A stretch of DNA of 64,000 bases from Mobula hypostoma (GCF_963921235.1 NC_086124.1:28148001-28212000), one strand, 5' to 3'. Numbered from the stretch's first letter, positions 1 to 24,699 are shown. Made by a program: numbers and translations. The notes: generated by a model from the letters alone, not told the origin.

Positions 1-165
1 AGACCTGGACTGAACACACTGTTCCAAGTGAGGTATAACCAGGGTTTTGTAGAACTGCATCATTACCTGTCAGCTCTTGAACTCAATCCCTCGACTAATG
101 AAGGCCAACATACCATATGCCTTCTTAACCACAATTTCAACTTTCATAGCAACGTTGAGGTGACT

Positions 166-365
166 NNNNNNNNNNNNNNNNNNNNNNNNNNNNNNNNNNN
201 NNNNNNNNNNNNNNNNNNNNNNNNNNNNNNNNNNNNNNNNNNNNNNNNNNNNNNNNNNNNNNNNNNNNNNNNNNNNNNNNNNNNNNNNNNNNNNNNNNNN
301 NNNNNNNNNNNNNNNNNNNNNNNNNNNNNNNNNNNNNNNNNNNNNNNNNNNNNNNNNNNNNNNNN
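166..365. other. Assembly gap (200 N)
   Basis: Run of exactly 200 N, a round length typical of a scaffolding spacer. Confidence 0.99.
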
Positions 366-539
366 CCGGTTGTCTTATGAGAAAGGGTCAGACAGGCTGG
401 GCTTGTATCCACTGAGGTCAGAAATGTCCTAATTGGCTTATTACAATACACCGAGGGAGAGTAAAAAGTATTTGTGAGCATGATATCCAAACCATCATTC
501 CATATATACAAGGTAGTACAAAAGCAAGTACTTGGGAGA

Positions 540-1470
540 ACTCGTGGAGGGTTCCCTAAATGTTAATTTGTCAGTTGAATCAATGGTAAGGGAGGCAAAT
601 GCAATGTCAGCATTCTTTTCCTATGGACTCAAATATGAAAGCAGGAATCTATTGCCGGGCCTCATTAGGCATTGATCAAATCCGCACTTGAAGTATTATG
701 AGCAGTTTTGGGCCTCTTATCTAAGAAAGGATATACCGGAATTAGAGAAGGCCCAGAGGAGGTTCATGAGAATGATCCCAGGAAGGAAAGTATTAACCAA
801 GAGAAAACACAAATCCGAGGTGCAAAGGGAATTGGAGGTCCTCGAACAGGATTCTCTAAAGGTTAATTTGCAGGTGGAGTCAGGAGTAAGGAAGGCAAGT
901 GCAGTGTTACCGTTCTTTTATGCTGAGGCTTCATAAGAGATTGGTCTTAAGCAGTTTGAGTATTGGAGAGGGTCCGAATGAGGATAACGAGAATGATCCT
1001 GACAATGCAAGGGTTAACATATGATGAGAATTTGATGGCTCTGGGCCTGTACTTGGTGGAGTTTAGCAGAATGATGGGGGTGGGGGATGAGGGTGTATGT
1101 ATCATTCAATCCTATCAAATACTGAAACGCCTAGACAGAGTGGACGTGGAGAGGATGTTTCCTCTCATGGGGGAGTCGAGCACCAGAGGACACAGCCTCA
1201 GAATAGAAGGACATCCTTTTAGAACAGAGATGAGAAGGAATTTCTTTAGGTAAGTCCCTGAATTCATTGCCACAGACTGCTCTGGAGGCCACGTCACTGG
1301 GTAGATTTAAAGATGAAGTTGAAAGCTTCTTCATCATTAAGGGTGTCAAAGGTTACGGGGAGAAGGCAGAAATACGGGGTTGAGTGGATAATAAATTAGC
1401 CATGAAATGCCTAAGCAGGTTCAATAGGCCAAATGGACTAATTCTGCTCCTATAATTTATGATCTTATGG
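540..1470 (+). mobile_element. CR1 LINE 3' fragments (degenerate)
   Basis: ORFs 688-936 and 963-1253 (YEQFWASYLRKD, ERMFPLMGESSTRGHSLRIEGHPFRTEMRRNFF) match the CR1 ORF2 C-terminus; a CR1-type 3' UTR follows. Confidence 0.85.
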
Positions 1471-2559
1471 TGATCAGCATGGTCCACTTGGACAGAAGTG
1501 CACATATCTGTATTACTCCATGACTGATGTAGAAAGGAGAGATACTAGTCCTCACCAGGTTACAGCAGGATTCTGTTCCTGTGAAACAATCGCAACCTGA
1601 ATGGGTTGAAAATGTGATCCAAATCACCCAATCATGTGGCAGCAACTCAATTCATCAAAGCATGCAGACATGGCCAAGAGGTCCAGTTGTTGTTCAGACC
1701 AAACATCAGATTGGGGAAGAAATGTGATCTGAGTGACTTTCACCATGGAATCTAGTCAAGATGGTGCCTGTGTACAACGTCCCGCTGGTCAACGTCTATG
1801 AGATAGTCAATGAATCTGTTTATTTCACTTCTTTTACGTCTGCTTTTCATCTGAAATGTGTTTCTGGAACTGTTAAGAGCCTGTGATTTACAGTTTGGAG
1901 ATCAATTGAGTGATCTAGTGCTTTGCTGTCTCCAGGAAGATTCCAGGAAGCTCAAACAGCCTCAGGGCGAAGCAGCTTAAAGGTAAGGCAGGGGCCAATG
2001 ATCGACTCCATTTGCCGAGTAAAGTGTCGAGGAAGATTGAATCTGAGGCAACTGCTTGCCTTTTGATTGCAGGGATGGACTTCTCTGCTGTCAGAGGAGT
2101 TTGTGTGGTGCCTTTCACTCTTTGTTGTTGGAGGGCAGGCCTCTGTGTTTGAGTGGTCTCTCTCTCTCTCTTTCACTGTTGGTCAGAGGATATTACCAGG
2201 TTCTGAATTTATGGATTGGACTATGGACTTCCAGTCTTATTTTTTTATATTCTATGTTTTCCCCTGTTCTTTCACCTTGTTATTGCATAGCATGTTTTGT
2301 TAGTTTTTTGTGTGGGGGAGGGGGTTTAGATGGGTTGATGTTCTTGTAGCGTTTTGATTTTTTTGTGCAGGGTGGGGGTTTGGGGGGGTTTGATGTTCCT
2401 GTTCAGTTTTGGTTTTTTTTTGCAGTGGAGGGGTGGGGGTTTGATGTTTATCTTTGAATGACTTCCATGGATTTCTTTTTTTTCCTGGCTATCTGGAGAA
2501 ATGAATCTCAGAGTTGAATACTGAATACATAGTTTGATAATAAATGAACTTTTGAACAA

Positions 2560-2930
2560 TTGCTGATGCATGACAGGTTGGTTTGAGTATCTCAGAAATT
2601 GTTGAGCTCCCGGGATTTTCAGGTACAAGTCTCGAGAGTTTAAAGTGAACAGTGTGATAAACAAACAAAAAAAATTATCTACTGAGTGGCAGTTGTGGGC
2701 AAAAATGCCTTGTTAGTGAGATTTCAGAGGAGAATGGCCAGACTGGTTCCAGCTAACAGGAACACGACAGTAACTGAAAGAACCGTCTGTTACAATGGTA
2801 GTGTGCAGAAGAGCATCACTGAACGCAAACATTTCGAACGCTGAAGTGGATGAGCTACAGCAGCATAAGACCATGACTGGTCACTTTATTATGTAGAGGA
2901 GGTGCCCAATAAAGTGGCCACTGAGTATAT
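2560..2930. mobile_element. Tc1/mariner-derived non-autonomous remnant
   Basis: Ends in CCAATAAAGTGGCCACTGAGTATA (TIR-like, TA end). The same family recurs at about 1630-1750, 3770-4231 + 6983-7080, 16270-16440 and 46290-46510. Confidence 0.75.
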
Positions 2931-3008
2931 AATATAGTTTTGGACAGAGTGTGAACCAGATCATCACCAGTACACTGGACCCCAAATTATTCAGACTCTG
3001 AGCCTTAC

Positions 3009-3290
3009 CCCAAACTGCATGTAGCTTGTCAGGGACGCTCAAATGCTCGATTTCACAAGTGTAAGTGTCACCCTTCTCGGGGTCAATTTCGACCTGTAGC
3101 CAGACTTGGAACGTCCTATCCCGGTTGGGTAAAATTCTCGTCATTAGCACTTCCTGATCGATCGCCACACCATTCCGCAGCCATGTTGCGTGGATTTTCT
3201 TGGGATAAAATCCATGCACTTGGCATGTCAGGGTCAAGGTATTCTCTCCGTTCTTCAGGTGTCTTGAGGTTATTGTGATCATCGGCTTTG
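3009..3290 (-). CDS. MHC-family gene, exon 3: Ig C1-set domain (class I alpha3 / W-category beta2-like)
   Basis: Acceptor ...tccactgcag and donor GTAAGG; 282 nt, phase 1-1, open. (A)KPMITITSRHLKNGENTLTLTCQVHGFYPKKIHATWLRNG...ILPNRDRTFQVWLQVEIDPEKGDTYTCEIEHLSVPDKLHAVW carries the C..GFYP..W, YxC and H C1-set hallmarks. Confidence 0.92.
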
Positions 3291-4231
3291 CTGCAGTGGA
3301 CAGAAACACATTGAAGCTGAACTTGGTTACAGGATCAAAAAAAGTAGAGAGTAACGGAATTTCAAAGTTCAAAGTATGTTTACTATTAAAGCATGTGTAT
3401 ATCATACAACCTTGAGATTACAGCATGACAGAATGGAGGAACAGACACAATGGGTCGAAAGGCCTAATTCTGTTCCTATGTTTATTCACCTCCCTAAATG
3501 CTGCCTGGCCTGCTGAATTCGTGCGGGTGTGTGTGTGTGCTGTTTTGGATTGCCAACATCTGCAGAATCTTTTCTGTTTTGAAACTGTCCCCTGGTCATA
3601 TGCATCCGACCAGGGGTATGGTTCTTTTAATCACTCCCAAGTCACAGGAAAGTTCCAAGGACTGGTGGCAACCCAAAGTTTCCATAAGGTGGAAATACTT
3701 AGAAATGAAAATTTGCATGGTTCAGTTAATTAGCTGCAGGTTAGTGCAGATCAGAATCAGGTTTAATATCATTCAATATCCACTTTATTATGTACACTTG
3801 CTCATTAATATAAACCTCTTATCAGCCAATCATGTTCCAGCAACTCAATGCATAAAAGCATGCAGACGTTGTCAAGAGGTTCAGTTGTTGTTCAGACCAA
3901 ACATCAGAATGGGGAAGAAATGCAATCTAATTAACTTTGACCATGGACCAGATGGGGTGGTCTGAGTATCTCAGAAACTGCTGATCTCCTGGGATTTTCA
4001 TACACAACGGTCTCTGGAGTTCACAGAGAACGTTGCGACAAAGAAAAAACATCCAATGAGCAGCAGTTTTGTGGGTCTTGTTAATGAGAGAGGTCAGAGG
4101 AGGATGGCCAGACTGGTTCAATCTGACAGGACGAGGATAGTAACTCAAATCACCATGTGTTACAGCAGTGGTGTGCAGAAGAGCATCTCTGAATGTACAA
4201 CATGTCACACCTCAAAGTGATTGAGCTACAG

Positions 4232-6982
4232 CAGTGATTCCCAAGGGGAGTGCGGTATTGTATGATGTCATGGGGGAGGGCAGTAAATGGCACCCCCTTA
4301 CTTGAGGCTTGAGACCTGACCGACCGTTAGTAGAGTAGGCACTTCCGACAAAAAGGATGAGGCACTGGAACACAGGAAGAACCACAGCTCAGCAGGCGGT
4401 GAGCACTTGTCCTCACAACAAGTCTGAAATTTGACAATCTCGTCCAACTTTACCAACCAAACAGACATTATTGAGGATGCGCAAATTAGCAACCAGGGTG
4501 TCCAACAGTTACCCTTGACTTGCAGCATGGAACGAGTTCGTGCAATTTAACAGTTAATAGGTCAAGTACACCCTCTCAACCTTCGCAACAGATCTCTAGA
4601 AAACAGGTCACGCAGCCGGAACCAAGTGATGAAATAGAGTCAATCAGTGAACCCGTCAACACTGAGGAATCCTCTTGAGGTGTTCAAAGTGACCTCGGCT
4701 TCATACGTGCGGTCAAGAACCATCTTTGGGGATTACGAGACTTCACGTGACTGGTCAATCGTGCTAACTGGAATAGTAAGAAGATGGCTTCCCAAACACA
4801 AGTTCTGTCCCGACTAACATTTGATTCCAATCTGAATCCTTGTCAATGTAATTTTTGCAGTTGTGATCGTCTTCATCTTTGCCTCGCTGTTCCTTTGCGT
4901 GCCGCTGCCATCGTTCCATCCGTGTCAACTCACTGCCGTCAACATCCGATAGGCATTCCCAGTGGTGTTAATTTATTATTTTAATGTAGCCCCGTTAACG
5001 GTGGGTAAGTACGTACGGTGCGATCTCTACAAGTTTGAAGGCAGTGAAGCCTTGAATTCTAATCCTGCTAAGAAACAGAAACTACACAAAGTGTGCCAAT
5101 ACAAAGTTACGTACCTGAAATATGGTTTTATTCCATCCCATTAGATCAGCAGCGCCCCATGTTTCCTATTTGTAATACTGTACTGTCTAATGAATCCATG
5201 AAACTATCAAGATTGCAGGAACGCTTCTGCAAAAGACACCTTGAAAAGGCTACTTATGGTATTACTCGGTTCCAGAAGATGAAAGAAGCATTGGAAAACC
5301 ATTGCACACGCAAGTCATTTGCCAAGAAATGACCTTGCTTGTGGTCTCGTTGCTTCTTATATCATTTCCAAAATGATAGCAAGCTGTGCAAAATCTCATA
5401 CAATTGGTGGAAGATTAATAATGCCTGCTGCATCAGAAGTGCTCACAACTGTTCTCAAAATGGAAACCAGTATTTTAAAATAATTTCCTCTAAGCAATAG
5501 CTCATCGTATTGATGAAATGAGTGAAGAGGTGGAATATCAACTTTGCACAGAGCCACAAAAAACAGAAGTTGGGATATAACTGGATGAGTCAACTGTGCA
5601 AGCCAACACAGCATTGCTAATGGCATATGTACGGTTTATCTAAAAGGGAGAAGTTTAGGAAGTGATTCTCTTTTGTAAAAAGTTAAAAACATATCAACAG
5701 AGAATCAATCTATGACGACCTCAAAATGCATATTGAGGATGAAAGTATTTCAATTAGGAACATGATTTCTTGTACAACAGATGGAGCACCATATATAACA
5801 GGTTGCCAAGCTAGTTTAGTGGCATTAATGAAAAAATAAATTCCAAGTTTGTTTACATCCATTGTGTAATTCATCATCAACACCTCGCAGCCAAAAACCT
5901 CAGCTAGTGACTTTTTTCAAGCATGACTCCTTTAATATCTGCTATCAACAAAATTAAAGATCATCCATTAAATAGCAGAATATTTCACCATTTATGCCAA
6001 AATATCAATGCAGAGATTGAACGCTTGTTTCTTCACACTGAAGTGTGTCGGCTGTCAAAAGCTGCTCCTTAAAACACTTCTTTGATCTTTTTGCACTGGC
6101 GGAAGTCAATGAGATTGGACTTCTATATGGAGATGTGGCAAACCAAGCCAATCTGTATGACAAACTGAATATTCTAAATATGAAACTGCTGGGTGAAAAC
6201 TTAAATTTAATCCAGACAAAAAGTGCAATGCCCACTTTTATCAGAAAATTGAAAAATATATAAGCAAAACATTGGGAGAAGAATGTTCTCAGTTTCCCTG
6301 CATGGAAAGTATGGCACTCTCTTTCACAGATGGTGATTTGCAAGAGTGCTCCTTACACCTGCAGTCACCGAAGAAAGATTTTCAGAATTGATTCAAGGAT
6401 TTGAACGCTCCAGAAATTCCGGACTGGGTAATTACCCTATTCCTTTGCAAGGTGGAAGAACAGGAAGAAAGCTTGCAAGAAAAAATTATCAAAATTCAGA
6501 ATAAGGGAGAAGCAAAAATGCTTATTTAAAAACATCAACTTTTGTGCTATGTGGCTAGAGGGTCATATGAAGTTTCCTGGTCTTTGAAGATGAGCCAAAC
6601 TGCTCTTCATTGTATTTCTATCCTCCTACCTTATTGAAAGTGCAGTGAACCACAAACTCACAAAAAACAGAAACCGCTTGGATATTGTCATGCGTGGGGA
6701 CTTAAGGCTTTTGCTGTCACAACTTGAACCAGATATTTCAACTCTTGCTAAAAACCTTCAAGCTTAAGGATCACATTCACGTCAAAGCTGCTGTACAGTG
6801 TGTAGGTACTTAGTAAGTTAGTTTTAAAGACCAATAACAATTTAAATCAGAATCAGTTTTCTCATGTCAGCATATGGTAGACATGTTTTTACACCATGGG
6901 GGTGCCAGAAAGTGCGTTGTGCCTTAGAAGAGCATTAGCAAGAATGAAAGTGCTTTAGGGAGGTGTTGGGCTAAAAACAGTT
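4232..6982 (+). mobile_element. Decayed hAT transposon, Buster/SCAND3-ZBED5-like
   Basis: Left end CAGTGATTCCCAA. Transposase remnants across several frames: YLKYGF and C..C..LSNESMK (BED finger), LDEST, TDGAP, HCVIHHQHLAAK, HTEV, KNRNRLD..DLRLLLSQLEPDI. Many stops and frameshifts. Lies in intron 2 of the MHC gene. Confidence 0.85.
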
Positions 6983-7724
6983 GAAAACAGTAGGCTGCAG
7001 CAACAGAAGACCACGAACATACACTCAGTTTCCACTTTATTAGCTACAGGAGAAACCTCATAAAGTGGTCACTGAGTATAAGGTCTTTTTGCTGACAAGT
7101 TTGCTGTCTTCTGCCAGCAATATGGTGTAATACATAAAAGGAATAAATTACAAAAACAAACATATTTAAATGAAATAAATAGTTCGAATAGAGAGCAAAA
7201 ATAGTGAGGTTATGTTCATGGGGTTTTTATGGACTGTTCATAAATCTGATGGGAGAAGGGAAGAAACTTTTCCTGAACCCTTGAGCGTATGCCTTCAGGC
7301 TCCTGTACCTCCTCCCTGAAAGTAGCACTGAGAAGAGGGCATGTCCTGGGTGGTGAGGGTCTTTAATGATGGATGATGCCTTTTTGAGGCATCACTCCTT
7401 GAAGATTCCTGAATGCTAAGGAGGCTCGTACCCATGATGGAACTGAGTTCACAAAATTCTGCAGCTTCTTTCAACCCTTTGCAGTATCTACACCCTCTCC
7501 CCCCATGTGCAGCCAGTTATACCTCTCCACGGTAAATCTGTAGAAATTTGCGCACATCTTTAACATACCAAATCTCCTCAAACTCGTAATGAAATATGGC
7601 CGCTGTCGTGCCATTTTGTAACTGCCTTGACATGTAGGCCCCAGGATAGATCCATAGAGACATTGATGTCTAATAACTTGAAATTGCTCACTCCCTCCAC
7701 TTCTGATCCCTCTTTGAGGACTGG

Positions 7725-8300
7725 TGTGTGTGTTCCCTTGTTTTGCCCTCTCTGTCAGCCTCTGCCACACAGCCTACTTGAACATCGCCTTGAAAACAAA
7801 ACTTTAATTCCACTTCCCACTCCCATGCCATGGCCTCCTCTTCTGTCAGGATGAGGCCGCACTCAGGTTGGAGGAGTAACATCTTATATTCCACCTGGGT
7901 AGCCTCCAACCTGTTTGCAGGACCACCGATTTCCCGAACTTCCAGTAATGCCCCCCCCCACTTCATCATTCCCCATTCCCTTTTCCCTCTTTCACCTTAC
8001 CTGCACATCACCTCCCTCTGGTGCTTCCCCCCTTTCTTTCTTCCATGCCCTTCTGTCCTCTCCTATCAGATTCCTCCTCCTCCAGCCCTGCACCTCTTTT
8101 CCCAATCAACTTCCCAGCTCCTTACTTCACCCCTCTCCACCTCCTAACTCTGACTCCTCAACTTGTTTCTCCAGTCCTGATGAAGGGTCTCAGCCCGAAA
8201 CGTCGTCTCTTCTCTTTTCCATAGATGCTGCCTGGCCTGCTGAGCTCCTCCAGCACTTTGTGTGTGCTGCTTGGATTTCCAGCATCTGCAGATTTTTTTG
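7725..8300 (+). mobile_element. Penelope-derived 3' fragment (GIY-YIG tail + terminal repeat)
   Basis: ORF tail VRMRPHSGWRSNILYSTWVASNL parallels the end of the 38555-39916 element; ends in the common GATGAAGGGTCTC...GCTGCCTGGCCTGCTGAG...TTTGTGTGTG repeat. Confidence 0.75.
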
Positions 8301-8315
8301 TGAAAATAAACTTAC

Positions 8316-8573
8316 CCGTCAGAGCTTGAACAGCCTGGTGAACGATCTCCATGGCAACAGGCATGGCATTAACACAGCAGGTAACATACTTGATAACCTC
8401 CGTATAGTGGTTCAGATCGTCCATGTAAGGCTTCACAATTGGATTGATGGCCACAAACTTTCCTGTTGTATAATTAAAGCGAACGGTCGTTTCTCCATTG
8501 TAAGCAAACTGCAGGGTAGCCATTGAAAACTGTGAACCTTTACCAGAGAAAGTCACTTGACCGATGTGCATTC
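8316..8573 (-). CDS. MHC-family gene, exon 2: membrane-distal domain (class I alpha2 / class II beta1-like)
   Basis: Acceptor ...ctgcttgccag and donor GTAAGT; 258 nt, phase 1-1, open. (G)MHIGQVTFSGKGSQFSMATLQFAYNGETTVRFNYTTGKFVAINPIVKPYMDDLNHYTEVIKYVTCCVNAMPVAMEIVHQAVQALT. GxHxxQ and QFAYxG match class I alpha2; YNxExxVRF...GxFxA...N matches class II beta1. Confidence 0.85.
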
Positions 8574-8699
8574 CTGGCAAGCAGATAATAATCGATCCGT
8601 TAGCCATTTGTGAGAGTGAAATGGCTCATTTTAAAACCTTAAAATTAATCAACCTGAAAGAACAAATTTGTCTCTCCCTTCTGTGGATACCTCACCATT

Positions 8700-9715
8700 C
8701 TGACGGCAACAGGTGCCACTCCTCCAGAGCCACCTCTCCCTCCCACCGTAAAACTCCAATAGCTGGGATTTGGTGGTGGTGCTGCTGACCCTTCACCCTC
8801 ACTCTCGGCACCCACCTCTTCCTCAGTTCGATGCCCACGTCCCCACCCACCTCTTCGCCCAAACCCCTCCTCGCCATTGAAGTGCCCTTCCCTCAACACC
8901 TCTCCCCACAGACATCTCTCCTCACTGTCCACACCCAACTCTCCACTCACTCCCTCTCTCCCTACCCACCCTCGGTGACTACTTCCCTCCCCAAACATCC
9001 TTGGCGGTCCCTCCCCACCCGCTCATCCATGGCCCCCTCTCCTCCCAATCTCTGTGCCCTCTATCCTCCCCACTCTCTGCACCCCAACAACTCCACTCCT
9101 CAGCCTTCAGTCCCACCCTTAGCACCCCTCTCCCTCCCCACACACCTTTGGCACCCTATTTCCTCTCCCACACACCCATCCCCAATATCCCCGCCCCTTC
9201 CGCCACCCCCTCAACAATACTCAATTCACCTCCACTCCCTCCCTACCTGTTCTCTCTCAGTGCCTCCTTCTCTTCCCATGCCCATTCGTTGCCCTCTCCC
9301 CTCTCCTTTGGAACGCCCTTCCCTCCCATTGTGCCCAGTCCACTGCCCTCCATTGGCACCCCCTCCTCCCCACCTTCCCTTTGCACCCCCTCCCCACCCT
9401 CCATTGGCACCCTTCCCCTCAGCTCTCCACCCTTCTTTGGTGCTCACTCCCCACCCTGCCTCAATGTCACTCCCCTCTCCTCCCCACCCTCCATCGGTAC
9501 TCATTCCCCTCCTCTCCCCTCTTAACTCTCCCTCAGTTCCCCTCCCCACCCTCCCTTGGTGCTACTCTCTCCACCTTCCTTCAGCGAGGTCTCCCTTTCC
9601 CTCCTGACCTTTACCTTCCCCTCCCTCCCTAGTTGCCCTCTTCCCTCTCTTGCCCACCCTCCCTCAGTGTCCCCACCCCTCTCTACCTCCCTACGCTCCA
9701 TCGGTGCCCCCTCCC
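8700..9715. repeat. C-rich (G-rich on gene sense strand) low-complexity tract in intron 1
   Basis: Dense CCCT/CCCCA runs for about 1 kb; the Pro-rich ORFs here are compositional artefacts. Confidence 0.9.
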
Positions 9716-10115
9716 ATCCCTGCCGCGCTGCGCTCCTCACCCAGGGCAGTGGAGCCGTTGAGGAGGAGGAGGAGGAAGGCGGCGAGCAGAGAGGGAGAGC
9801 GGCGTCGCCTCACGCCGGCCGGCGGCTCCTGAGACAGCGGGAGGAGCAGCTGGCTCACGGTTCGCGGAGACGGCATCATTCCCCACATCCCTTTCACCGA
9901 AGGCTGAGGACCTTGTCACACAGCCTCTACGCGCGAAACCGATCGCCAGCCGGCAGGTCCCGTAACGGGAGGCGATCGATGTAGAAGTTTCCCCGGCTGA
10001 GTGGACGGCCGCTGCCACAGACAGGCGGGGCGAGGCGGGAGAAACGCCTTCTGTTTCCACATGGCGCTTTATTCTCAACGAGACTCAACAACACTAGACG
10101 AAAAATGATTGGGAT
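9715..10115 (-). promoter_or_regulatory. CpG-island promoter of the MHC-family gene
   Basis: Local CpG enrichment against a CpG-poor background; GC-box-like GGCGGGGCGAGGCGGG near 10025; CCAATCA on the sense strand near 10107-10113; kappaB-like GGGAAACTTC (one mismatch) at 9984-9993. Confidence 0.65.
9741..9888 (-). CDS. MHC-family gene, exon 1: leader/signal peptide
   Basis: ATG at 9888 (in-frame ATGs at 9879 and 9876). MWGMMPSPRTVSQLLLPLSQEPPAGVRRRRSPSLLAAFLLLLLNGSTAL then G|GTGAGG donor, phase 1 (148 nt). Joins exon 2 in frame; basic n-region, Leu core and T-A-L-G cleavage region. Confidence 0.8.
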
Positions 10116-10152
10116 ACCAGCTGAGAGGAGCGTGGATGGGGTCGGGTAATAA

Positions 10153-10620
10153 CAGGTGAGGGGGAGGTAGGTGTGTGGGTGGGACACCAGGTGAGGGGGG
10201 GTAGTTGTGTGGGTGGGACACCAGGTGAGGGGGAGGTAGGTGTGTGGGTGAGATATCAGGTGAGGGGGAGGTAGGTGGAATACCAGGTGAAGGGGAATTG
10301 GGTGGGTGGGACACTAGATGAAGGGGAGGTAGGTGTGTGGGTGGGATACCATGTGAGGTGGGAGGTAGGTGTGTGGGTGGGACACGAGGTGAAGGGGAGA
10401 TAGGTGTGTGAGTGGGATACCAGATGAGAGGGAGGTAGGTTTGTGGGTGAGATACCAGGTGAGGGGGGAGGTAGGTGTTTGGGTGGGATACCAACTGGGG
10501 GGAGGTGGGTGGGTGGGATGCCAGGTGAGAACGGAGGTGTGTGGGTGTAATACCAGGTGAGGGGGAGGTGGAATGGGGTGAAAGCAGGTGAGGGGGAAGG
10601 TGGGTGGATGGGATACCAGT
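10153..10620 (+). repeat. G-rich minisatellite, about 33-35 bp unit, about 13-14 copies
   Basis: Unit approximately CAGGTGAGGGGGAGGTAGGTGTGTGGGTGGGACAC, repeated with variants. Confidence 0.9.
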
Positions 10621-10669
10621 TCATCAATAAGGTGGGTGATAGAAGGAGTATACCAGGTGAGAGGAACAG

Positions 10670-10673
<4 letters not shown>

Positions 10674-10709
<36 letters not shown>
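10674..10709. repeat. (TG)n microsatellite
   Basis: About 18 TG units followed by a G run. Confidence 0.97.
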
Positions 10710-10711
<2 letters not shown>

Positions 10712-11799
10712 GGGGGGGTGTTGTGTGGAAGGGGGCTACCAGGTAAGAGGGGATAGCAGGTGTTTAGATGGTAGACAGGTGGATAGTAGATGGGGGTATG
10801 CCAGACAAAGGGGAAGGTGTGAGTTTCCTCCATTTTCTATTCCTATCAGATTCCTTTTTCAGCCTTAACCTCCTCCACCAATCACCTTCCAGCTTCTTAT
10901 CTCAAAACCTCAACCCATCCCACCCACCTTCCCCCTCTCCTGGCCTCACCTATCACCTGCAAGCATGTTCACCTTCCCCACCTCCCACCTTCTTATTCTG
11001 GCTTCCCCCCACCCCCCAACCCCCACCTTCCTTTCCAGTCCTGGTGAAGGTTCTCGGTGTGAGATGTTGATTGTCCATTTCCCTCTCTGGACATTGCCTG
11101 ACCTGATGGGTTCCTCCGGCATTTTGTGTGTCTTACATTTATGTAGCATCTTTGAAGACATTCCGTGTCAATTAAATGTGTCATCAAACGCTCAGGAGGC
11201 CGATGGCACCTAATGACGACTTCTTTGCTTGCATCTTTGGAAACAGCTCTATTTCTTTTTTTTCCTTTTCAGGGTTCTTTTGAAGATCCTGACCTGGAGT
11301 GACACGCTGACTTCGGTTCTTTGTGGGAATGGGACCTGCTCTCGGGGTCTCACGACTGGCTGCTTTTCAATATGCCACGGACGCGGCCTGGAAGACTCGC
11401 GCACCTTTGGTGTGCCGGATTCCGGTGGCTCTGGAGGCAGGCGGACTCAAGGTCGGTGCCAGTGCCTGGTGTGTTGTGGGAGACCAAAGGGCACAGAGCA
11501 CGGAAAAAGCAACACAGTAGACTTTTAAAAACGCAAACACGAGAGAATCTGCAGATGTTGGAATTTCAAGCTGTGGTAAACCATATATATTGTAACTGGG
11601 TTACCTGTCTGGACACGCCCCTCTGCTGACTGCTCCTGTGGTTCATCCCAGAGACCCCTGAATAAAGGCGATTGTGTCACTGCTCCTCCTCTCAGGCCAG
11701 GGGCAGATACTCAGCATGGTGGAGGTCACACTTTACTGCTAATAAAAGCCTTTCAGTATTTACTCTACTTCCAGTCTTTTGGAGTTATTGATGGTGCAT

Positions 11800-15400: not shown

Positions 15401-17392
15401 GTTCTGCACGTGACTGCAAGAAACTGTGGAGCTGTGGTGCACAACTCAGCACATCGCGGAAAGCGGCTTCTCCTCCATACACTGCTTGCAGCTTCAGCAA
15501 AACAGCCAGCATAACCAAGGACCCCAGCCACCCCAGACATTCTCTCTTCTCCCCTCTGCATTGGGCAAAAGCCTGAAAGCATGCACTACCGGGCTCACGG
15601 ACAGAGTTCATCCTGGTTATAAGGCCGGTGAATGGCCCTCTAGTCAGATGAGGTGGAATCTGGACCTCATAATCTCTCTGGTTGTTGCCTGTGCTGTGTT
15701 TTCTCTGTTACTGGAAGACCCTACTCTTCATTGTGTGATTGCTTTCCCCTTGTACCATCTCAGTGCGCTGATGTGATAAATGATTTGCTGGTGTGGCAGG
15801 CAAAACCAAATTTTCCCACTCCTTTCAAGATGTTTGAGGCCATCTTCAAAAGGCAATGCCTGAAAAGGGTGGCATCCGTCACTAAGGACCCCATCACCCA
15901 GGACGCACCCTCTTCTCATTGCTACCATCGGAGAGGAGGTACACGGACCTGAAGGCACACGCTCAACATTTTAGGAACAGCTTCTTCTCCCCCTCCACCA
16001 CATTTCCAAATGGTCCATTACCTCATGAGTACTATTTTGCTGTCTTTTCTCTCTACTTATTTATTTTAATGTATTGTCATTTATATATTGAAATCTATAG
16101 CATTTTGTAGGCATTGCAATGTTCTGCTGTTGCAAAACAATCGCTTTCACGACACATGTCAGTGATATTAAACCTGATTCTGTGCTTGGGGTCACATGAC
16201 AATTTCAGTGTGGGAGAAACATGGACAAGCCACACAACATATTGCACATGTTTCCAGTGAATGCTTGATATTCACTCAGGGGCCACTTTATTAGGTACTT
16301 TAATGCAAATATCTAATCAGCCCATCATTTGACAGCAGCTCAATGCATGTGTTTTTGTTCAGACCAAACATCAGAATGGGGGAAGAAATGTGATCTAAGT
16401 GACTTTGACTGTTGGTGCCAGATGGGGTGGTTTGAGTATCTACTGTGAGATCGAGAATCTGCGGAGACGAAGACGAAGGCCCCAAATCCTTGGCTTTGCA
16501 TATCGCCTGTTGCCGGGGCCGGGGTCGAAACGCTCGGCAGAGATGGTGCTTGGTGTCGAATAGGTGGTCGGAGGATCGGAGTTTTTCGGACGGATTCGGA
16601 GTCGGACTGTGGTCAGATTTTTCTGGGATGCTGCATCGGCAAGTTGGCAGCGCTGGAGGTTTACCGTCTGCGTGAGATGATGGGACTTTCGAGAGACTCT
16701 GTGACTTTTACTGTGCCATGGTCTGTTCTTATCAAATTATGGTATTGCTTTGCACTGTTGTAACTATATGTTATAATTATGTGGTTTTTGTCAGTTTTTA
16801 AGTCGGTTTGTCATGTGTTTTTGTGTTATCTTTCTGGAAAGACATTTTTATCATTTCTGAATGCATGCATTACTAAATGACAGTAAAAGGGACTGCGTGT
16901 CCTCATAATCATAATTTGTTAATGAGAGAGGTCAGAGGAGAATGGCAAGACTAGTTCATACTGACAGGAAGACAACAGTGAGTCAAATAACTACACATTA
17001 AAACAGCAGTGTGCAAAAGAGCATCTTGAATGCACAGCATGTGCACCTTGAAGTTTGTACGTTCTCCTTGTGACCATGTGGGTTTCCTCTGGGTGCTCTG
17101 GTTTTCTCCCACTGTCCCCAGACCTACTGGTTGGTAGGTTAATTGGTCTTTGTAAATTGTCCTGTGATTAGACTAGCATTAAAATGGGGTTTCTGGATGG
17201 CACAGCTCAAAGGAGAAGGGCCTAAAATATTTATAACTAAATAAACCTACACTTAACAATAATCAACCAATTTACCAATTTCAAAGTGGAAGAAAGACGG
17301 CAAGCCACACTATATATTACATAAATTTGCATATTTTAAATTCTGTGCATTCTTTGGGGAGATGAGGAACTTAACTCAGCTTTGGGGAAGTT

Positions 17393-18024
17393 TCACATGG
17401 GAGGTCTCGTGTTGGCTCTGTGCCCAAGACACAAAATTATATTCTGCAGCACACTGAAATGCACTGAACCTGACCTGGGGGATTTCTCAAGCTGTGTTCC
17501 TTTGTTCAACCAGGAAATGGTCTCATTGAAATATCCTTACAACCAACTACACTGGATTATCCACATAACAATAATATTTTGAGCGGAGAGCAGCAGTTAC
17601 TCAATAAGATCTGGTTTCTTTTCTATCATATGTCCCTTGTTCAAGGCTCAAAGTAGATGTATTATTAAAGTACATATATGTCACCATACAGAACTCTGAG
17701 ATTCATTCCCTGTGGGACTACGTACATAGTAAATCCAATGTGTCACCAATGTTCCGGATTCTTCTCTGAGAACCCATGAGTCCAAAATTTAAGTGTAGAA
17801 AAGTAGCATCACATACTTAACGTCCATTTTGGGAGATTAACCCCCAGCAATTTAGAAAACTGGAAAAATAGAAGCCCTATGAAGGGTCTTGGCCCAAAAT
17901 ATCAACTCTTATTCCTGTAGCCACTGAGTTCTTCTGGAATCTTGTGTGTGTTACTCAAAAGTGGAAAATACTGGATTTTCCTCCGGCCAGGCTAAAGGAT
18001 TCAGTGTGACTCTGGTCTGAGGTC
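17393..18024 (-). pseudogene. Degenerate Ig C1 exon (MHC alpha2-like) split by a 345-bp insertion
   Basis: Acceptor ...ttttacccag at 18025. Removing 17596-17949 (the 17605-17949 insert plus one copy of its flanking 9-bp direct repeat GTTACTCAA, present at 17596 and 17950) gives one frame of 93 codons. Trp at position 37 (same as exon 3), TTT in place of Cys at 23, a later Cys-x-x-His, and TGA at the terminal Trp position; two internal stops. Confidence 0.5.
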
Positions 18025-21856: not shown

Positions 21857-22100
21857 ATAACTTCCATGATGTTAATGATGTAGACAGCTTGGCATTCAGG
21901 ATCAGAACTTCCTTGGTACGGGTGACTTCAAAGACAGGGTTTGAGGTGGTTCAGACCACTGATAAAGTCCTTCAACAGTGGAATACTGGCCAAAAATTTC
22001 CTGACAGGGAAATCAAAATAGGTGATGTCTTTGCCAATGTAACCAAATCGCAGGCCCGTTTCTGAGAACCACAGAGCTGTGTAGGAGTCGACTGTCTTCC
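21857..22100 (-). pseudogene. MHC alpha1-like exon with a +1 frameshift
   Basis: Acceptor ...gttcatcag, phase 1. (G)KTVDSYTALWFSETGLRFGYIGKDITYFDFPVRKFLASIPLLKDFISGLNHLKP, then +1 frame VFEVTRTKEVLILNAKLSTSLTSWK. GxDIxYxDF..RK..AxIP and KxxLxxxxxLS follow class II alpha1 spacing, and the core aligns to exon 2 (LxFxYxG, KFxA, P, K, LNH). The unshifted frame stops at 21928; the donor is weak. Confidence 0.7.
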
Positions 22101-24699
22101 CTGATGAACACAATTGAGAAGAAGGATAGTTGAAGAGTCGTCTCAAGGGTAGGGTGTGTTGCGAATGAATTGCATGAAACATGGTGATTTATATCTTCTG
22201 AGTTGCAGGTTCCATCTGACTATAAGTTACAATTTCAATCCATTTGCTCCCATGCTAGACAACACACTTGTTAGACCACACTTACGTTGACTGTGTGACT
22301 ATCAGAAATGGCTGAGAGTATTGGATACAACAAAGTTTACGGGAGCAGAAGCCACCCCAGCTGTAGTACTGTAGACCAGAGCTAGGCATGCCCCTAATGA
22401 ATAGTGGGGAGAAGCAAAGGGATCTTGGGGCTCACATCCATAGATCGCTCAATGTTTGGTAGGACAAGTTATCAGATCAGGTTTAATACCACTGGCATAT
22501 GTCATGTAAATTGTTGATTTGTTGTCTTGTGGCAATTATTGACATATAAAACTATGAATCACATTAAGAAGGACACATAGAATTAAATAAGTAGTGCAAA
22601 AAGAGAGGGAAAAATTCTGAGGTGGTGTTCATGGGTTCATTGTCCATTCAGAAATCTGATGGAAGAGGGGAAGATTCTGTCCCTGAAACATTGAATGTGC
22701 CTCCTCAGGCTCCCATACCTCCTCCTTGATGGTAGCAAAGAGAAGACATGTCCTAGGTGATGGATGCTACCTGCCTGAGGTATCGCCTTTTGAAGATGTC
22801 CTGGATGTTGAGGAGGCTAGTGCCCATGATGCAGCTGGCTGAGTTTACAACTTTCTACAGAGTTTTCTGATCCCGTGTCATGGCCCCTCCATAACAAACT
22901 GCGATGCAACCAGTTTGAATGCTCCCCATGGTACATCTATAGAAATCTGCATGTGTCCTTAGTGACATACCAATTTTCTTCCAACTCCCAATGAAATACA
23001 GCCGCCATTGAGACTTCTTTGTAAACTGCATCAATATGTTGAACCCAGATTAGAGCTTCAGAGATGTTAACACCCAAGAACTGGAAACCGCTCACCTTTC
23101 CACTGTTATGCTTTAAGAAAGGGTATGGTGTATTGGCCTTCAATTAGTCAGGGAATTTAATTCAAGGGTGAGGAGGTAATGTTGCAGCTCTGTTAAACGC
23201 TGGTTTGACCCCATTTGGAGTATTGTGTTCAGTTCTGGTCACCTCATAGGAAGGACATGGAGGCTTTAGAGAGGGTGCAGAGGTGATTTACCAAGATTCT
23301 GCCTGGAGTGGTGAGCATGTCTTATGAGAAATGACTGAGCGAGCTCAGGCGTTTCTCTTTGGAGCGAAGGAAGGCGAGAGATGACTTCATGGAGGTCTAC
23401 AAGACGATATCAAGTGGATGGTCACTAAATCTACTCTGTGTTTTTCACTTGCCTATTTCAATGCTTCAAGTCTTTTGCTTCATTCGATATGATTGGGACT
23501 GATACTCTGATTTCAACATATTCTTTCTCTTTACTTACTCATTTTGATAATTTCTACATCCAGAAATCTATCTTTCTTCTTAAAGGTAATGATAAAGATT
23601 AATTTGTCACACGTATATTGAAAGCAAACATGCAGAGTAATATGTCGTTTGCATTAACAACCAACACAACTTAAGGTCGCCACACATTCCGGCGCCAACG
23701 TAACGTTTATCGGAACAATATGAGCAACAAAACAACAGAACAGCAATAAATCAACAACAACAAAGCAGGCTCTATTCCTCCCGACCACACACACACAGAT
23801 GGTCCTCCAACCCCAGGACAGTCCGCCTTTGAGCATCCAACCTCCGATGATCTTGGAGATATCAACCTCCAGACTTCCGTTTGACCTTCAGGCTTCGATA
23901 TTTGATATTGATCCCAGGACCTGCCAGTGAAAGGACCTTGAACTCCAGACTTGCCAACTCATGCACCAAAGGGATCACCTGTCCTCATGCCTCCTGCTCA
24001 CGTGAATCCACAGACCCGGGCAGATTCAGAGGGTCAGTGCATATTGGCCCATCTTGAAGGTAACCCTCTTCATATAAGCTGGAACAGGTGGTTGGCTTTG
24101 AAGGTCTGTGAAACTCAGGAAAAAAATACTGCAGATACTTGATTGGAATTGTCCACGATTTCCAGCATTTCTGTGTTATTTCACTTGCACCTCAAGTCTT
24201 TTGCCTCATTCATTACGATAATGTCTAATCCCATCAAAACGAGATGCTTTTGTTCTTTCCTCACACTCTTCGATGACTTCTACTTGCAGAAATCTATCTG
24301 TCTTCTTAAAGATTAAGGTGAAGATTGGCTTTAGTTGTCACATCTACCTTGACACATACAGTGAAATGCGTTGTTTGCATCGATCAATCAGTGAAGATTG
24401 TGCCAAGGGCAGGCTGCAAGTGTCGCCATGCTTCTGGCACCAGGATAGCCTGCCCACAGCTTGCTAACACTAACTGTACGTGGGAGGAAACGGGAGCTCC
24501 TGAAGGAAACACACACCGTCATGGGGAGAAAGTACAAACTCCTTACAGACAGCAGCAGGAATTGAACACCGATTGGTGATTGCTGCCGCTTTAATGGCAT
24601 TTTGCTAACCGCTACGCTACAATGCTGCAAAATCCTAATGATGTGCCAGACTGGCTGATTTTCTAGGCTGTTGGATGTTGTCTTTTAACGCCCCTGCCT

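Follow-up and report, generated by a model that had tools for sequence, protein, structure and literature searches.

The 64 kb stretch of Mobula hypostoma DNA analysed here, hereafter the window, carries on its minus strand three exons, 9888-9741 (148 nt), 8573-8316 (258 nt) and 3290-3009 (282 nt), which are very probably the initial coding exons of an expressed gene whose product is a W-category beta chain, within the WB_DS1-like subgroup. The W-category is a third MHC group, in which a class II layout is combined with class I-type contact residues (Okamura et al., 2021, PMC8713811). Each exon begins after an AG acceptor or, for the first, at the start ATG, and ends before a GT donor; the borders are thus GT-AG, the joins are in phase 1 and the spliced frame runs for 229 codons plus one base with 0 stops. 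The features of the gene, from its 5' end, are:

9889..9950, minus strand: 5' UTR of the first coding exon, covered by colinear RNA-type contigs; it extends further 5'
9741..9888, minus strand: leader exon, with the start ATG at 9888 and an open frame up to the GT donor at 9740-9739; joined to exon 2 in contigs
8574..9740, minus strand: intron 1, 1167 nt, low-complexity and C/T-rich, without an MHC-like exon
8316..8573, minus strand: beta1 exon; Pfam MHC_II_beta E 1e-5, WB clade 97/92, AF2 fold
3291..8315, minus strand: intron 2, 5025 nt, with dispersed repeats throughout; skipped exactly by a 955-nt contig
3009..3290, minus strand: beta2 exon; Pfam C1-set E 8e-19, WB clade 94/92, class I alpha3-type Ig domain
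1..3008, minus strand: start of intron 3, with an N run at 166-365 inside it

The 229 residues encoded in the window match without exception (100% identity) the N-terminal part of P0160, a RefSeq model of M. hypostoma with 292 residues; its remaining 63 residues form the connecting peptide, transmembrane helix and tail. Exons for these last parts are absent from the readable window, as judged by a hydrophobicity scan and by tblastn with the RefSeq tail, which gave nothing significant. A candidate transmembrane exon downstream of exon 3, consisting of 21 hydrophobic codons between stops, proved to lie inside a dispersed repeat and was discarded. The leader product, identical to residues 1-49 of the RefSeq model, is a signal region of 49 residues that contains RRRR and a poly-Leu core and ends in STALG. 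An in-frame stop at 9918-9916, 27 nt 5' of the ATG, falls within the stretch that is colinear with the contigs, and the protein therefore starts with the Met at 9888. By eye, a candidate CCAAT, candidate GC boxes and an ISRE-like GAAACAGAAGG can be seen within 250 nt 5' of the ATG.

Both splice junctions are represented among RNA-type contigs. In a 955-nt contig, 8574..8316 is fused directly to 3290..3009, the exon 3 part shows no differences from the window, and the contig continues for 406 nt beyond exon 3. Exon 2 of this copy also occurs without differences in a 136-nt contig, which continues into the final 8 nt of the leader. In longer contigs exon 2 is spliced to the leader and the sequence stays colinear with the window between 9790 and 9950 at least; one contig continues for 232 nt beyond that. 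One contig has a mosaic exon 2, whose variants may be allelic or paralogous. The leader in the long contigs is 3 nt shorter than that of the window and they may come from a paralog; support for the copy-specific leader-exon 2 junction is the contig with only 8-9 nt of leader. Read depth is 0 over 8580-9755 in four RNA-type runs, and the high read depth within intron 2 has repeat families as its only source. The gene is thus expressed and correctly spliced. The arrangement given in the preliminary description, a leader, one membrane-distal exon and one Ig exon joined in phase 1 into 229 codons, agrees with the splice sites and with the contigs at both junctions. Its further claim that intron 1 holds no alpha1 exon is borne out by the zero coverage, by contigs that splice leader straight to exon 2 across the proposed 9741>8573 junction and by a tblastn search of intron 1 with 300 MHC-family proteins, in which no match was found.

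Elsewhere in the 64 kb, MHC-like matches are confined to one beta1-type remnant. This is a frame at 22188-21931 on the minus strand, about 12 kb upstream, which matches WB beta1 (E 2e-6 to 5e-6) and not alpha1, runs into a stop at about 76 residues and is missing from all listed RNA-type runs under the same species label; it is a decayed beta1-type exon. A faint Ig-like frame at about 17400-17650 had no significant match to any family member. With tblastn using MHC-family proteins, no WA alpha-chain exon was found in the 64 kb, so there is no head-to-head WA pair here, and the orthologous gene of the manta M. birostris (93% identity), which spans 18.4 kb, has no neighbour within 10 kb. In shark, a C1-set gene lies head-to-head with the WB relative. 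Sharks and seven further batoid genera have relatives of the window gene. The chain shares 42-43% identity over 196 aligned residues, and 57% in the Ig domain, with a great white shark sequence that matches the one named WB_DS1-like by Okamura et al. (2021, PMC8713811), and it has the motifs AKP.ITITSR and FAFDGEE in common with the little skate WB_DS1-like rows of the 2021 paper datasets.

To place the two extracellular domains we used profile searches, domain-wise trees and structure prediction. Exon 2 exceeds the gathering score of the Pfam family MHC_II_beta and also has a weak match to MHC_I, in its alpha2 part. Among solved structures, the Ig exon is closest to MR1 and class I alpha3. 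A search of the PDB with the beta1 sequence listed designed 'Cake' propellers first, spurious matches that arose because weak repeat scores were added up; the genuine matches, to class II beta, were weak (E 0.2-1.7). The domain-wise trees, a check suggested in the preliminary description, group the window chain with WB and outside class II beta and class I; the class I and classical class II comparators were from tetrapods. In the Ig-domain tree the WB clade including the window (94/92), class II beta (87/97) and class I (94/87) are all separate, with the WB Ig clade as sister to class I alpha3, and in the distal-domain tree the same three clades, likewise separate, have supports of 97/92, 99/98 and 98/94. 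Both domains nest within the WB_DS1-like clade, which spans sharks, skates and rays. AU tests in which the window Ig domain was forced into class II beta or class I were non-significant (p 0.06 and 0.16, respectively; 94 columns). The predicted fold comprises four strands and a helix, then an Ig domain and then a membrane helix, with the beta1 strands at 54-91 and helices at 94-135 in the AF2 model, and the best solved whole-chain matches found with Foldseek are HLA-DR beta chains (E 7e-14).

We then compared the residues that mark the MHC categories, numbered as in the SI of Okamura et al. (2021), where Q6, A32, G35, 37, P57 and 61 correspond to HLA-A2 96, 117, 120, 122, 235 and 239. The class I-type beta1 residues Q6, A32 and G35 are present as Q55, A73 and G76 of the protein, A32 and G35 being invariant across all WB chains aligned, and H3 is also present, in common with class I. 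P57 is present as P190; all 19 WB and all 12 class I chains have P at this position, and 7 of the 9 class II beta chains have Q. Two positions deviate. Position 61 is R194, and not W; among WB chains R occurs only here and in the manta orthologue, G being found in 17 of the 19 WB chains and all class I chains and W in 9 of 9 class II beta chains. At position 37 the acidic residue (HLA-A2 D122) is absent, with T78 in its place here and a T in the M. birostris orthologue; D or E occupies this position in 13 of 17 other WB chains, and V and A are found in two Mobula paralogs. In the W-category, the acidic beta1 position 37 contacts W61 of the alpha2/beta2m-like domain (Okamura et al., 2021, PMC8713811). 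Since both are conserved contact residues, the changes D/E37 to T and G61 to R may alter or weaken the pairing of this copy. The beta1 domain also has an N-glycan site (FNYT) and no disulfide, and its helix carries an unusual Cys-Cys pair found only in the M. hypostoma/M. birostris orthologue pair. In the membrane helix, seen in RefSeq model P0160 and not in the window DNA, G239xxxG243 is invariant among 15 family members; a single GxxxG has been reported for W beta chains (PMC13399432). The framework is kept throughout, including the Ig cysteines, the core Trp, P57, A32, G35, the glycan site and GxxxG. The residues listed in the preliminary description in HLA class I numbering (H93, Q96, Q115, A117, G120, P235 and W244 present, W153 absent, T at D122 and R at G239) were all confirmed in alignments that followed the numbering of the paper. 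W244 and Q115, however, are not traits of the WB family and belong to this copy or its subclade.

The RefSeq name of the model, "class II beta chain-like" (e.g. 'H-2 class II histocompatibility antigen, E-S beta chain-like'), suggests a class II beta chain of ordinary kind, whether classical or nonclassical, as do the Pfam MHC_II_beta match and the HLA-DR beta chains as best whole-chain fold. We consider this very improbable, because the chain lacks W61 and the beta1 cysteine, both found in 9 of 9 class II beta chains, carries P at position 57 instead of the Q usual in these, falls outside a separate class II beta clade in both trees and has an Ig domain that matches class I alpha3 best, while the HLA-DR fold match reflects only the common two-domain architecture. 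That alpha3-type Ig domain, together with the groove-type MHC open frame at 22188-21931 on the same strand, could instead point to a class I-type gene with a missed alpha1 exon at about 22100, alpha2 at 8573-8316 and alpha3 at 3290-3009, the 'leader' being internal or spurious. We give this hardly any credence: contigs join the leader to exon 2 and remain colinear past the in-frame stop 5' of the ATG, the RefSeq model begins with the same three exons, and the upstream frame is the truncated WB beta1 match described above, missing from the listed RNA-type runs. The replacement of D37 and G61 of the W pattern and the helix Cys-Cys pair of a single orthologue pair might also be taken to indicate an undescribed MHC lineage apart from the W-category, class I and class II, which the preliminary description had offered beside a WB-type gene. 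This is extremely improbable, as both domains lie deep in the WB_DS1-like clade beside rays, skates and sharks and the departures are limited to one Mobula orthologue pair, paralogs and other batoids keeping G61 and most of them D/E37. The WB-type assignment, which the trees, the layout and the interface residues all favour, stands; the gene is one more copy of the known WB family and not a new lineage, and only interface positions 37 and 61 and the beta1 helix deserve the word "divergent".

Mobula carries several recent WB copies, and most of the differences among them lie in the beta1 helix (17 of 42 positions, vs 5 of 44 in the sheet); one of them, paralog P0006, has a beta1 domain that is exactly the translation of contig X8. 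Between this copy and P0006, pN/pS is 1.44 overall, not significantly different from 1, and about 1.4 in both domains. Such values would be compatible with relaxed constraint and with a WB-derived gene that is still transcribed and is losing function, with no adjacent WA, two interface residues lost and neutral drift towards a pseudogene, and they are joined by T37 and R61, by 5 of 7 beta2 differences from the manta orthologue being unique to this copy, and by a window with no WA exon and a decayed beta1-type exon 12 kb upstream. We nevertheless regard loss of function as unlikely. The frame is intact in two species, and T37 and R61 are common to both, so that these changes are older than the species split; all framework residues are kept, and the gene is transcribed and correctly spliced. 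Within beta1, moreover, pN/pS is 0.59 in the sheet and 2.69 in the helix (19 replacement to 2 silent changes, p 0.13, non-significant), which, small as the counts are, resembles a diversifying ligand face and not uniform decay, the beta1 helix being the face that would meet ligand or receptor. A broader scenario, quite unlikely on present evidence, is that devil-ray WB_DS1-like genes have multiplied and become uncoupled from head-to-head WA, with the beta1 helix under diversifying selection, and that this copy, in which both conserved contact residues (37 and 61) are replaced, pairs anew, with a shared WA encoded elsewhere, with beta2-microglobulin or with itself. If true, the W-category in devil rays would be an actively evolving, many-gene ligand-binding system and not a relic.

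As a WB_DS1-like chain, the product is a type I membrane glycoprotein with a signal peptide. Its beta1 domain forms half an MHC groove, with four strands under one long helix and no disulfide, followed by a class I alpha3-type beta2 Ig domain, a short connecting peptide, a GxxxG membrane helix and a short tail. By analogy with the family, the predicted partner of the chain is a WA alpha chain, which has a beta2-microglobulin-like alpha2 domain; bound non-covalently, the two would form a class II-shaped heterodimer at the cell surface, joined by class I-type contacts. WA/WB pairing and arrival at the surface have been shown only for recombinant chains of tiger salamander (Okamura et al., 2021, PMC8713811), and the Mobula copies are natural variants with which W chain pairing could be tested. 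The gene adds an expressed ray member to WB, full-length and with transcript support, and leaves the overall picture of MHC evolution unchanged. The RefSeq label "class II beta chain-like", carried by the whole batoid family, needs correcting.

The closest known systems are the WB_DS1 and WB_DS1-like genes of banded houndshark, great white shark, catshark, dogfish and little skate (PMC8713811), which have the same layout of leader, beta1, beta2 and CP/TM/CY. The window copy is like WB_DS1-like chains in its beta1 without a disulfide, Q6, A32, G35, the FNYT glycan site, P57, the lack of W61 and GxxxG, and unlike them in having T37 for D/E, R61 for G, the helix Cys-Cys pair, a long signal region and a Mobula-specific multi-copy set. 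Moreover, shark WB_DS1L adjoins WA_DS10L, whereas the window copy has no WA_DS10-like neighbour within the 64 kb. With classical class II beta genes (HLA-DRB, elasmobranch DAB) it shares gene structure, two extracellular domains, a single-pass GxxxG anchor and the chain fold, yet it lacks W61, the beta1 cysteine and the F at position 3, all present in 9 of 9 class II beta chains, has P57 and falls in separate clades for both domains. The alpha2-alpha3 part of class I heavy chains (HLA-A2, MR1, chicken BF2) has in common with it H3, Q6, A32, G35, P57 and an alpha3-like Ig domain. In contrast to class I heavy chains, the window gene is without an alpha1 exon, and its product lacks the alpha1 domain and the alpha2 disulfide, carries R in place of G239 of the HLA-A2 numbering and has a membrane helix of the class II beta type.

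The Mobula hypostoma gene whose first three coding exons lie on the minus strand between 9888 and 3009 is expressed and correctly spliced, and encodes a WB_DS1-like chain, i.e., a chain from a subgroup of the beta chains of W-category MHC. In this chain, an MHC half-groove domain is followed by an Ig domain resembling class I and a membrane anchor resembling that of class II beta.

Exons of the WB-type gene in the window
9888-9741, minus strand: leader exon, 148 nt, start ATG and GT donor
8573-8316, minus strand: beta1 exon (exon 2), 258 nt, AG acceptor and GT donor
3290-3009, minus strand: beta2/Ig exon (exon 3), 282 nt, AG acceptor and GT donor

The three exons are in phase 1 at every join and yield 229 open codons plus one base; exons, phase, open frame and domain types are all as the preliminary description had read them. 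In Pfam, exon 2 matches MHC_II_beta above the curated cut-off (E 1e-5), with a weak match to the alpha2 part of MHC_I, and exon 3 matches C1-set (E 8e-19). When solved structures were searched, the Ig exon scored highest with MR1 and class I alpha3 domains (domain E ~1e-17), while the beta1 exon gave class II beta matches, all of them weak. An AlphaFold model computed from a 15-sequence alignment, with moderate confidence (~80 in the domains), contains four strands with one long helix, then an Ig domain of seven strands and a membrane helix. Among solved structures it matches HLA-DR beta chains best (E 7e-14), a likeness of the predicted fold that reflects the shared two-domain chain architecture. 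The 229 residues are 100% identical to residues 1-229 of P0160, the M. hypostoma RefSeq model of this gene (292 residues); RefSeq has thus already modelled the gene, but files it as class II ('H-2 class II histocompatibility antigen, E-S beta chain-like isoform X3'). Beyond residue 229, P0160 continues with VPKNTYPVYGY, then a membrane helix and a tail of 30 residues. These gave no match in the readable window by tblastn and a hydrophobicity scan, and the exons for the membrane helix and tail therefore lie further downstream.

Exon 3 is present in eight public runs, stored as contigs and assigned to two coded organisms, A and B. These runs behave as RNA. The contigs are spliced, and in four runs the depth over unique intron sequence is zero in all at 8580-9755 and zero or near zero in most at 4400-4800. 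The silent remnant at 21931-22188 upstream is also absent from every listed run of organism A. A 955-nt contig from run X1 fuses 8574..8316 directly to 3290..3009 and extends for 406 nt more; its exon 3 equals the window without change, including residues that only this copy has. Exon 2 of this copy is found with zero differences in a 136-nt contig, followed by CAGGGCAG (the last bases of the leader, plus-strand form), and in contigs of 460, 173 and 283 nt exon 2 is spliced to a leader that is colinear with the window to at least 9950. The 9741>8573 junction is seen in these RNA-type contigs, which splice the leader straight to exon 2; an alpha1 exon always lying in between would have refuted the WB reading. 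An in-frame stop at 9918-9916, 27 nt 5' of the ATG, falls inside the contig-colinear stretch. This fixes the start of the protein at 9888 and leaves no way for an alpha1 exon to contribute, as had been claimed from the sequence.

In the longer contigs, the poly-Leu tract of the leader (GAG/CTC repeat, 9751-9789) falls 3 nt short of the window's length in organism A and exceeds it by 3 nt in organism B. These lengths fit the poly-Leu tracts of P0006, a Mobula paralog, and of the M. birostris orthologue, and on this likeness some of the leader-exon 2 contigs may stem from sister copies. At 8475-8490 of exon 2, the X1 contig also carries a six-base patch that changes TTVRFN to VAVGFD, the P0006 version, which points either to conversion between gene copies or to an assembly that is a chimera of two transcripts.

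Long C/T-rich low-complexity tracts lie on both sides of the leader exon (8600-9700 and 10150-10760), the upstream one with tandem units such as CCTCACCTGGTGTCCCACCCACACACCTACCTCCCC. The 250 nt 5' of the ATG contain one CCAAT box, two GC boxes and an ISRE-like GAAACAGAAGG (9990-10120, minus strand); these may belong to a promoter or to the 5' UTR, as one contig reaches 232 nt past 9950. Dispersed repeats at 3800-4200 and 7200-8300 (intron 2), 2716-2880 and 16954-17172 show RNA-type contig depths of up to tens of thousands; copies of these families recur across the window with the common frame '…DALLHTT.VT…'.

Relatives were collected by searching 1.8 billion representative proteins with the Ig exon and then by cluster look-ups and BLAST. 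Identity is 93% to the M. birostris counterpart and 84% to two other genes of M. hypostoma; a fourth M. hypostoma gene is 60% identical. Related genes occur in batoids (Hemitrygon, Hypanus, Pristis, Amblyraja, Leucoraja, Rhinoraja) and sharks (Carcharodon, Cetorhinus, Stegostoma, Heptranchias, Hemiscyllium, Chiloscyllium). In two Mobula RefSeq isoforms of sister genes (P0005, P0165), the prediction skips the beta1 exon and joins the leader to the Ig domain; since all exons are in phase 1, such isoforms stay in frame. Two cyprinid proteins of 263-269 residues from Garra and Labeo (P0185, P0186), named 'zinc-alpha-2-glycoprotein', have Ig domains that group with alpha-type chains rather than class I (100/100 with a class II alpha-like chain of Anabarilius); they could be alpha chains under a wrong name, possibly WA of teleosts.

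W-category MHC is defined by a class II alpha/beta layout, class I-type interdomain residues and WA/WB gene pairs (Okamura et al., 2021, PMC8713811). The shark WB_DS1-like sequence of that paper is, scanning errors aside, P0155, the Carcharodon member of our set; its 'whale shark WB_DS1-like' fragment is close to the Stegostoma member, and a partial 'little skate WB_DS1-like' row in its datasets has the same AKP.ITITSR and FAFDGEE motifs. Over 196 aligned residues, the window protein shares 42-43% identity with the shark sequences (57% in the Ig domain). Trees were built from the Ig domain and the 92 residues before it in 19 WB-type, 12 class I, 9 class II beta and some alpha-type chains, the comparators for class I as well as class II coming from tetrapods. 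The Ig tree places the window protein inside one WB clade (94/92, 97% of bootstrap trees), separate from class I alpha3 (94/87) and class II beta2 (87/97); a first run recovered WB and class I as sisters (90/87). In the distal-domain tree the corresponding values are 97/92* for WB, 98/94* for class I alpha2 and 99/98* for class II beta1. AU tests on 94 columns were weak, with p 0.06 for the window's Ig domain forced into class II beta and p 0.16 for class I. Both domains thus fall in a WB clade apart from tetrapod class I and class II beta and, together with the W-category residues, bear out the main reading of a WB-type gene. The alternative of a further, undescribed MHC lineage is unsupported: the gene is an additional member of the WB_DS1-like family, published in 2021 with skates included.

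The residue map of the W-category paper equates alpha2 H3, Q6, A32, G35 and D37 with class I positions 93, 96, 117, 120 and 122, and alpha3 P57 and G61 with 235 and 239. This copy has H3, Q6, A32, G35 and P57, in agreement with the class I-type residues first noticed, and A32, G35 and P57 are invariant across all WB chains aligned. The two departures reported at D122 and G239 also appear in the alignments. Most WB chains carry D or E at position 37; two Mobula paralogs have V or A there, and this gene and its orthologue have T. At position 61, G occurs in 17 of 19 WB and all class I chains and W in 9/9 class II beta chains; R is restricted to this gene and the manta orthologue. The W244 of the preliminary description is confirmed, but no other WB chain compared has it. 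The beta1 disulfide is missing from every shark and Mobula chain, and a helix Cys-Cys pair (C115, C116) is confined to this orthologue pair.

A run X8 contig differs from the window at 30/259 bases in exon 2 and 13/222 in exon 3, and its exon 2 translates to exactly the beta1 domain of P0006, which means that the P0006 copy is also expressed. Nei-Gojobori replacement:silent counts between this copy and the P0006-type copy are 25:5 for the whole of beta1 (pN/pS 1.44), 6:3 for its sheet (0.59), 19:2 for its helix (2.69, p 0.13) and 10:2 for beta2 (1.5). The proteins differ at 17/42 helix and 5/44 sheet positions; against the manta orthologue there are six differences in the helix and none in the sheet. 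This clustering in the helix fits a diversifying ligand- or receptor-facing surface, and relaxed constraint as the cause of divergence between the copies is likewise compatible with the counts.

When about 300 MHC-family proteins were compared with the 64 kb by tblastn, only the three exons and one further match were found. The latter (22068-21931, minus strand) is to WB beta1 domains, with 39% identity over 46 residues to Pristis (E 2e-6). Its frame (21931-22188, minus strand), 12 kb upstream of the gene, runs for about 76 residues to a stop and occurs in none of organism A's listed runs; it is therefore a decayed beta1-type exon, probably of a former tandem WB copy. It is thereby rejected as an alpha1 exon of this gene and as an alpha-chain partner. 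A faint Ig-like frame at about 17400-17650 (minus strand; …ISWLNKG… / …ILCLGHRAN…), interrupted by stops, has no significant match to any family member and, if real, would represent that decayed copy's Ig exon.

By analogy with its family, the partner of the chain would be a WA chain with a beta2-microglobulin-like alpha2 domain, and the pair would form a class II-shaped cell-surface heterodimer with class I-type interdomain contacts. T37 and R61 fall exactly on the contacts that define the W-category, so pairing of this copy may be altered. These two changed contact residues, a Mobula expansion and the lack of an adjacent WA gene are the modest twist of this gene. Shark WB_DS1L lies head-to-head with WA_DS10L, whereas the same tblastn comparison found no WA exon in the 64 kb around the Mobula gene. 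In the membrane helix, G239xxxG243 is invariant, in keeping with the single GxxxG that has been reported in the beta chains of W molecules (PMC13399432).
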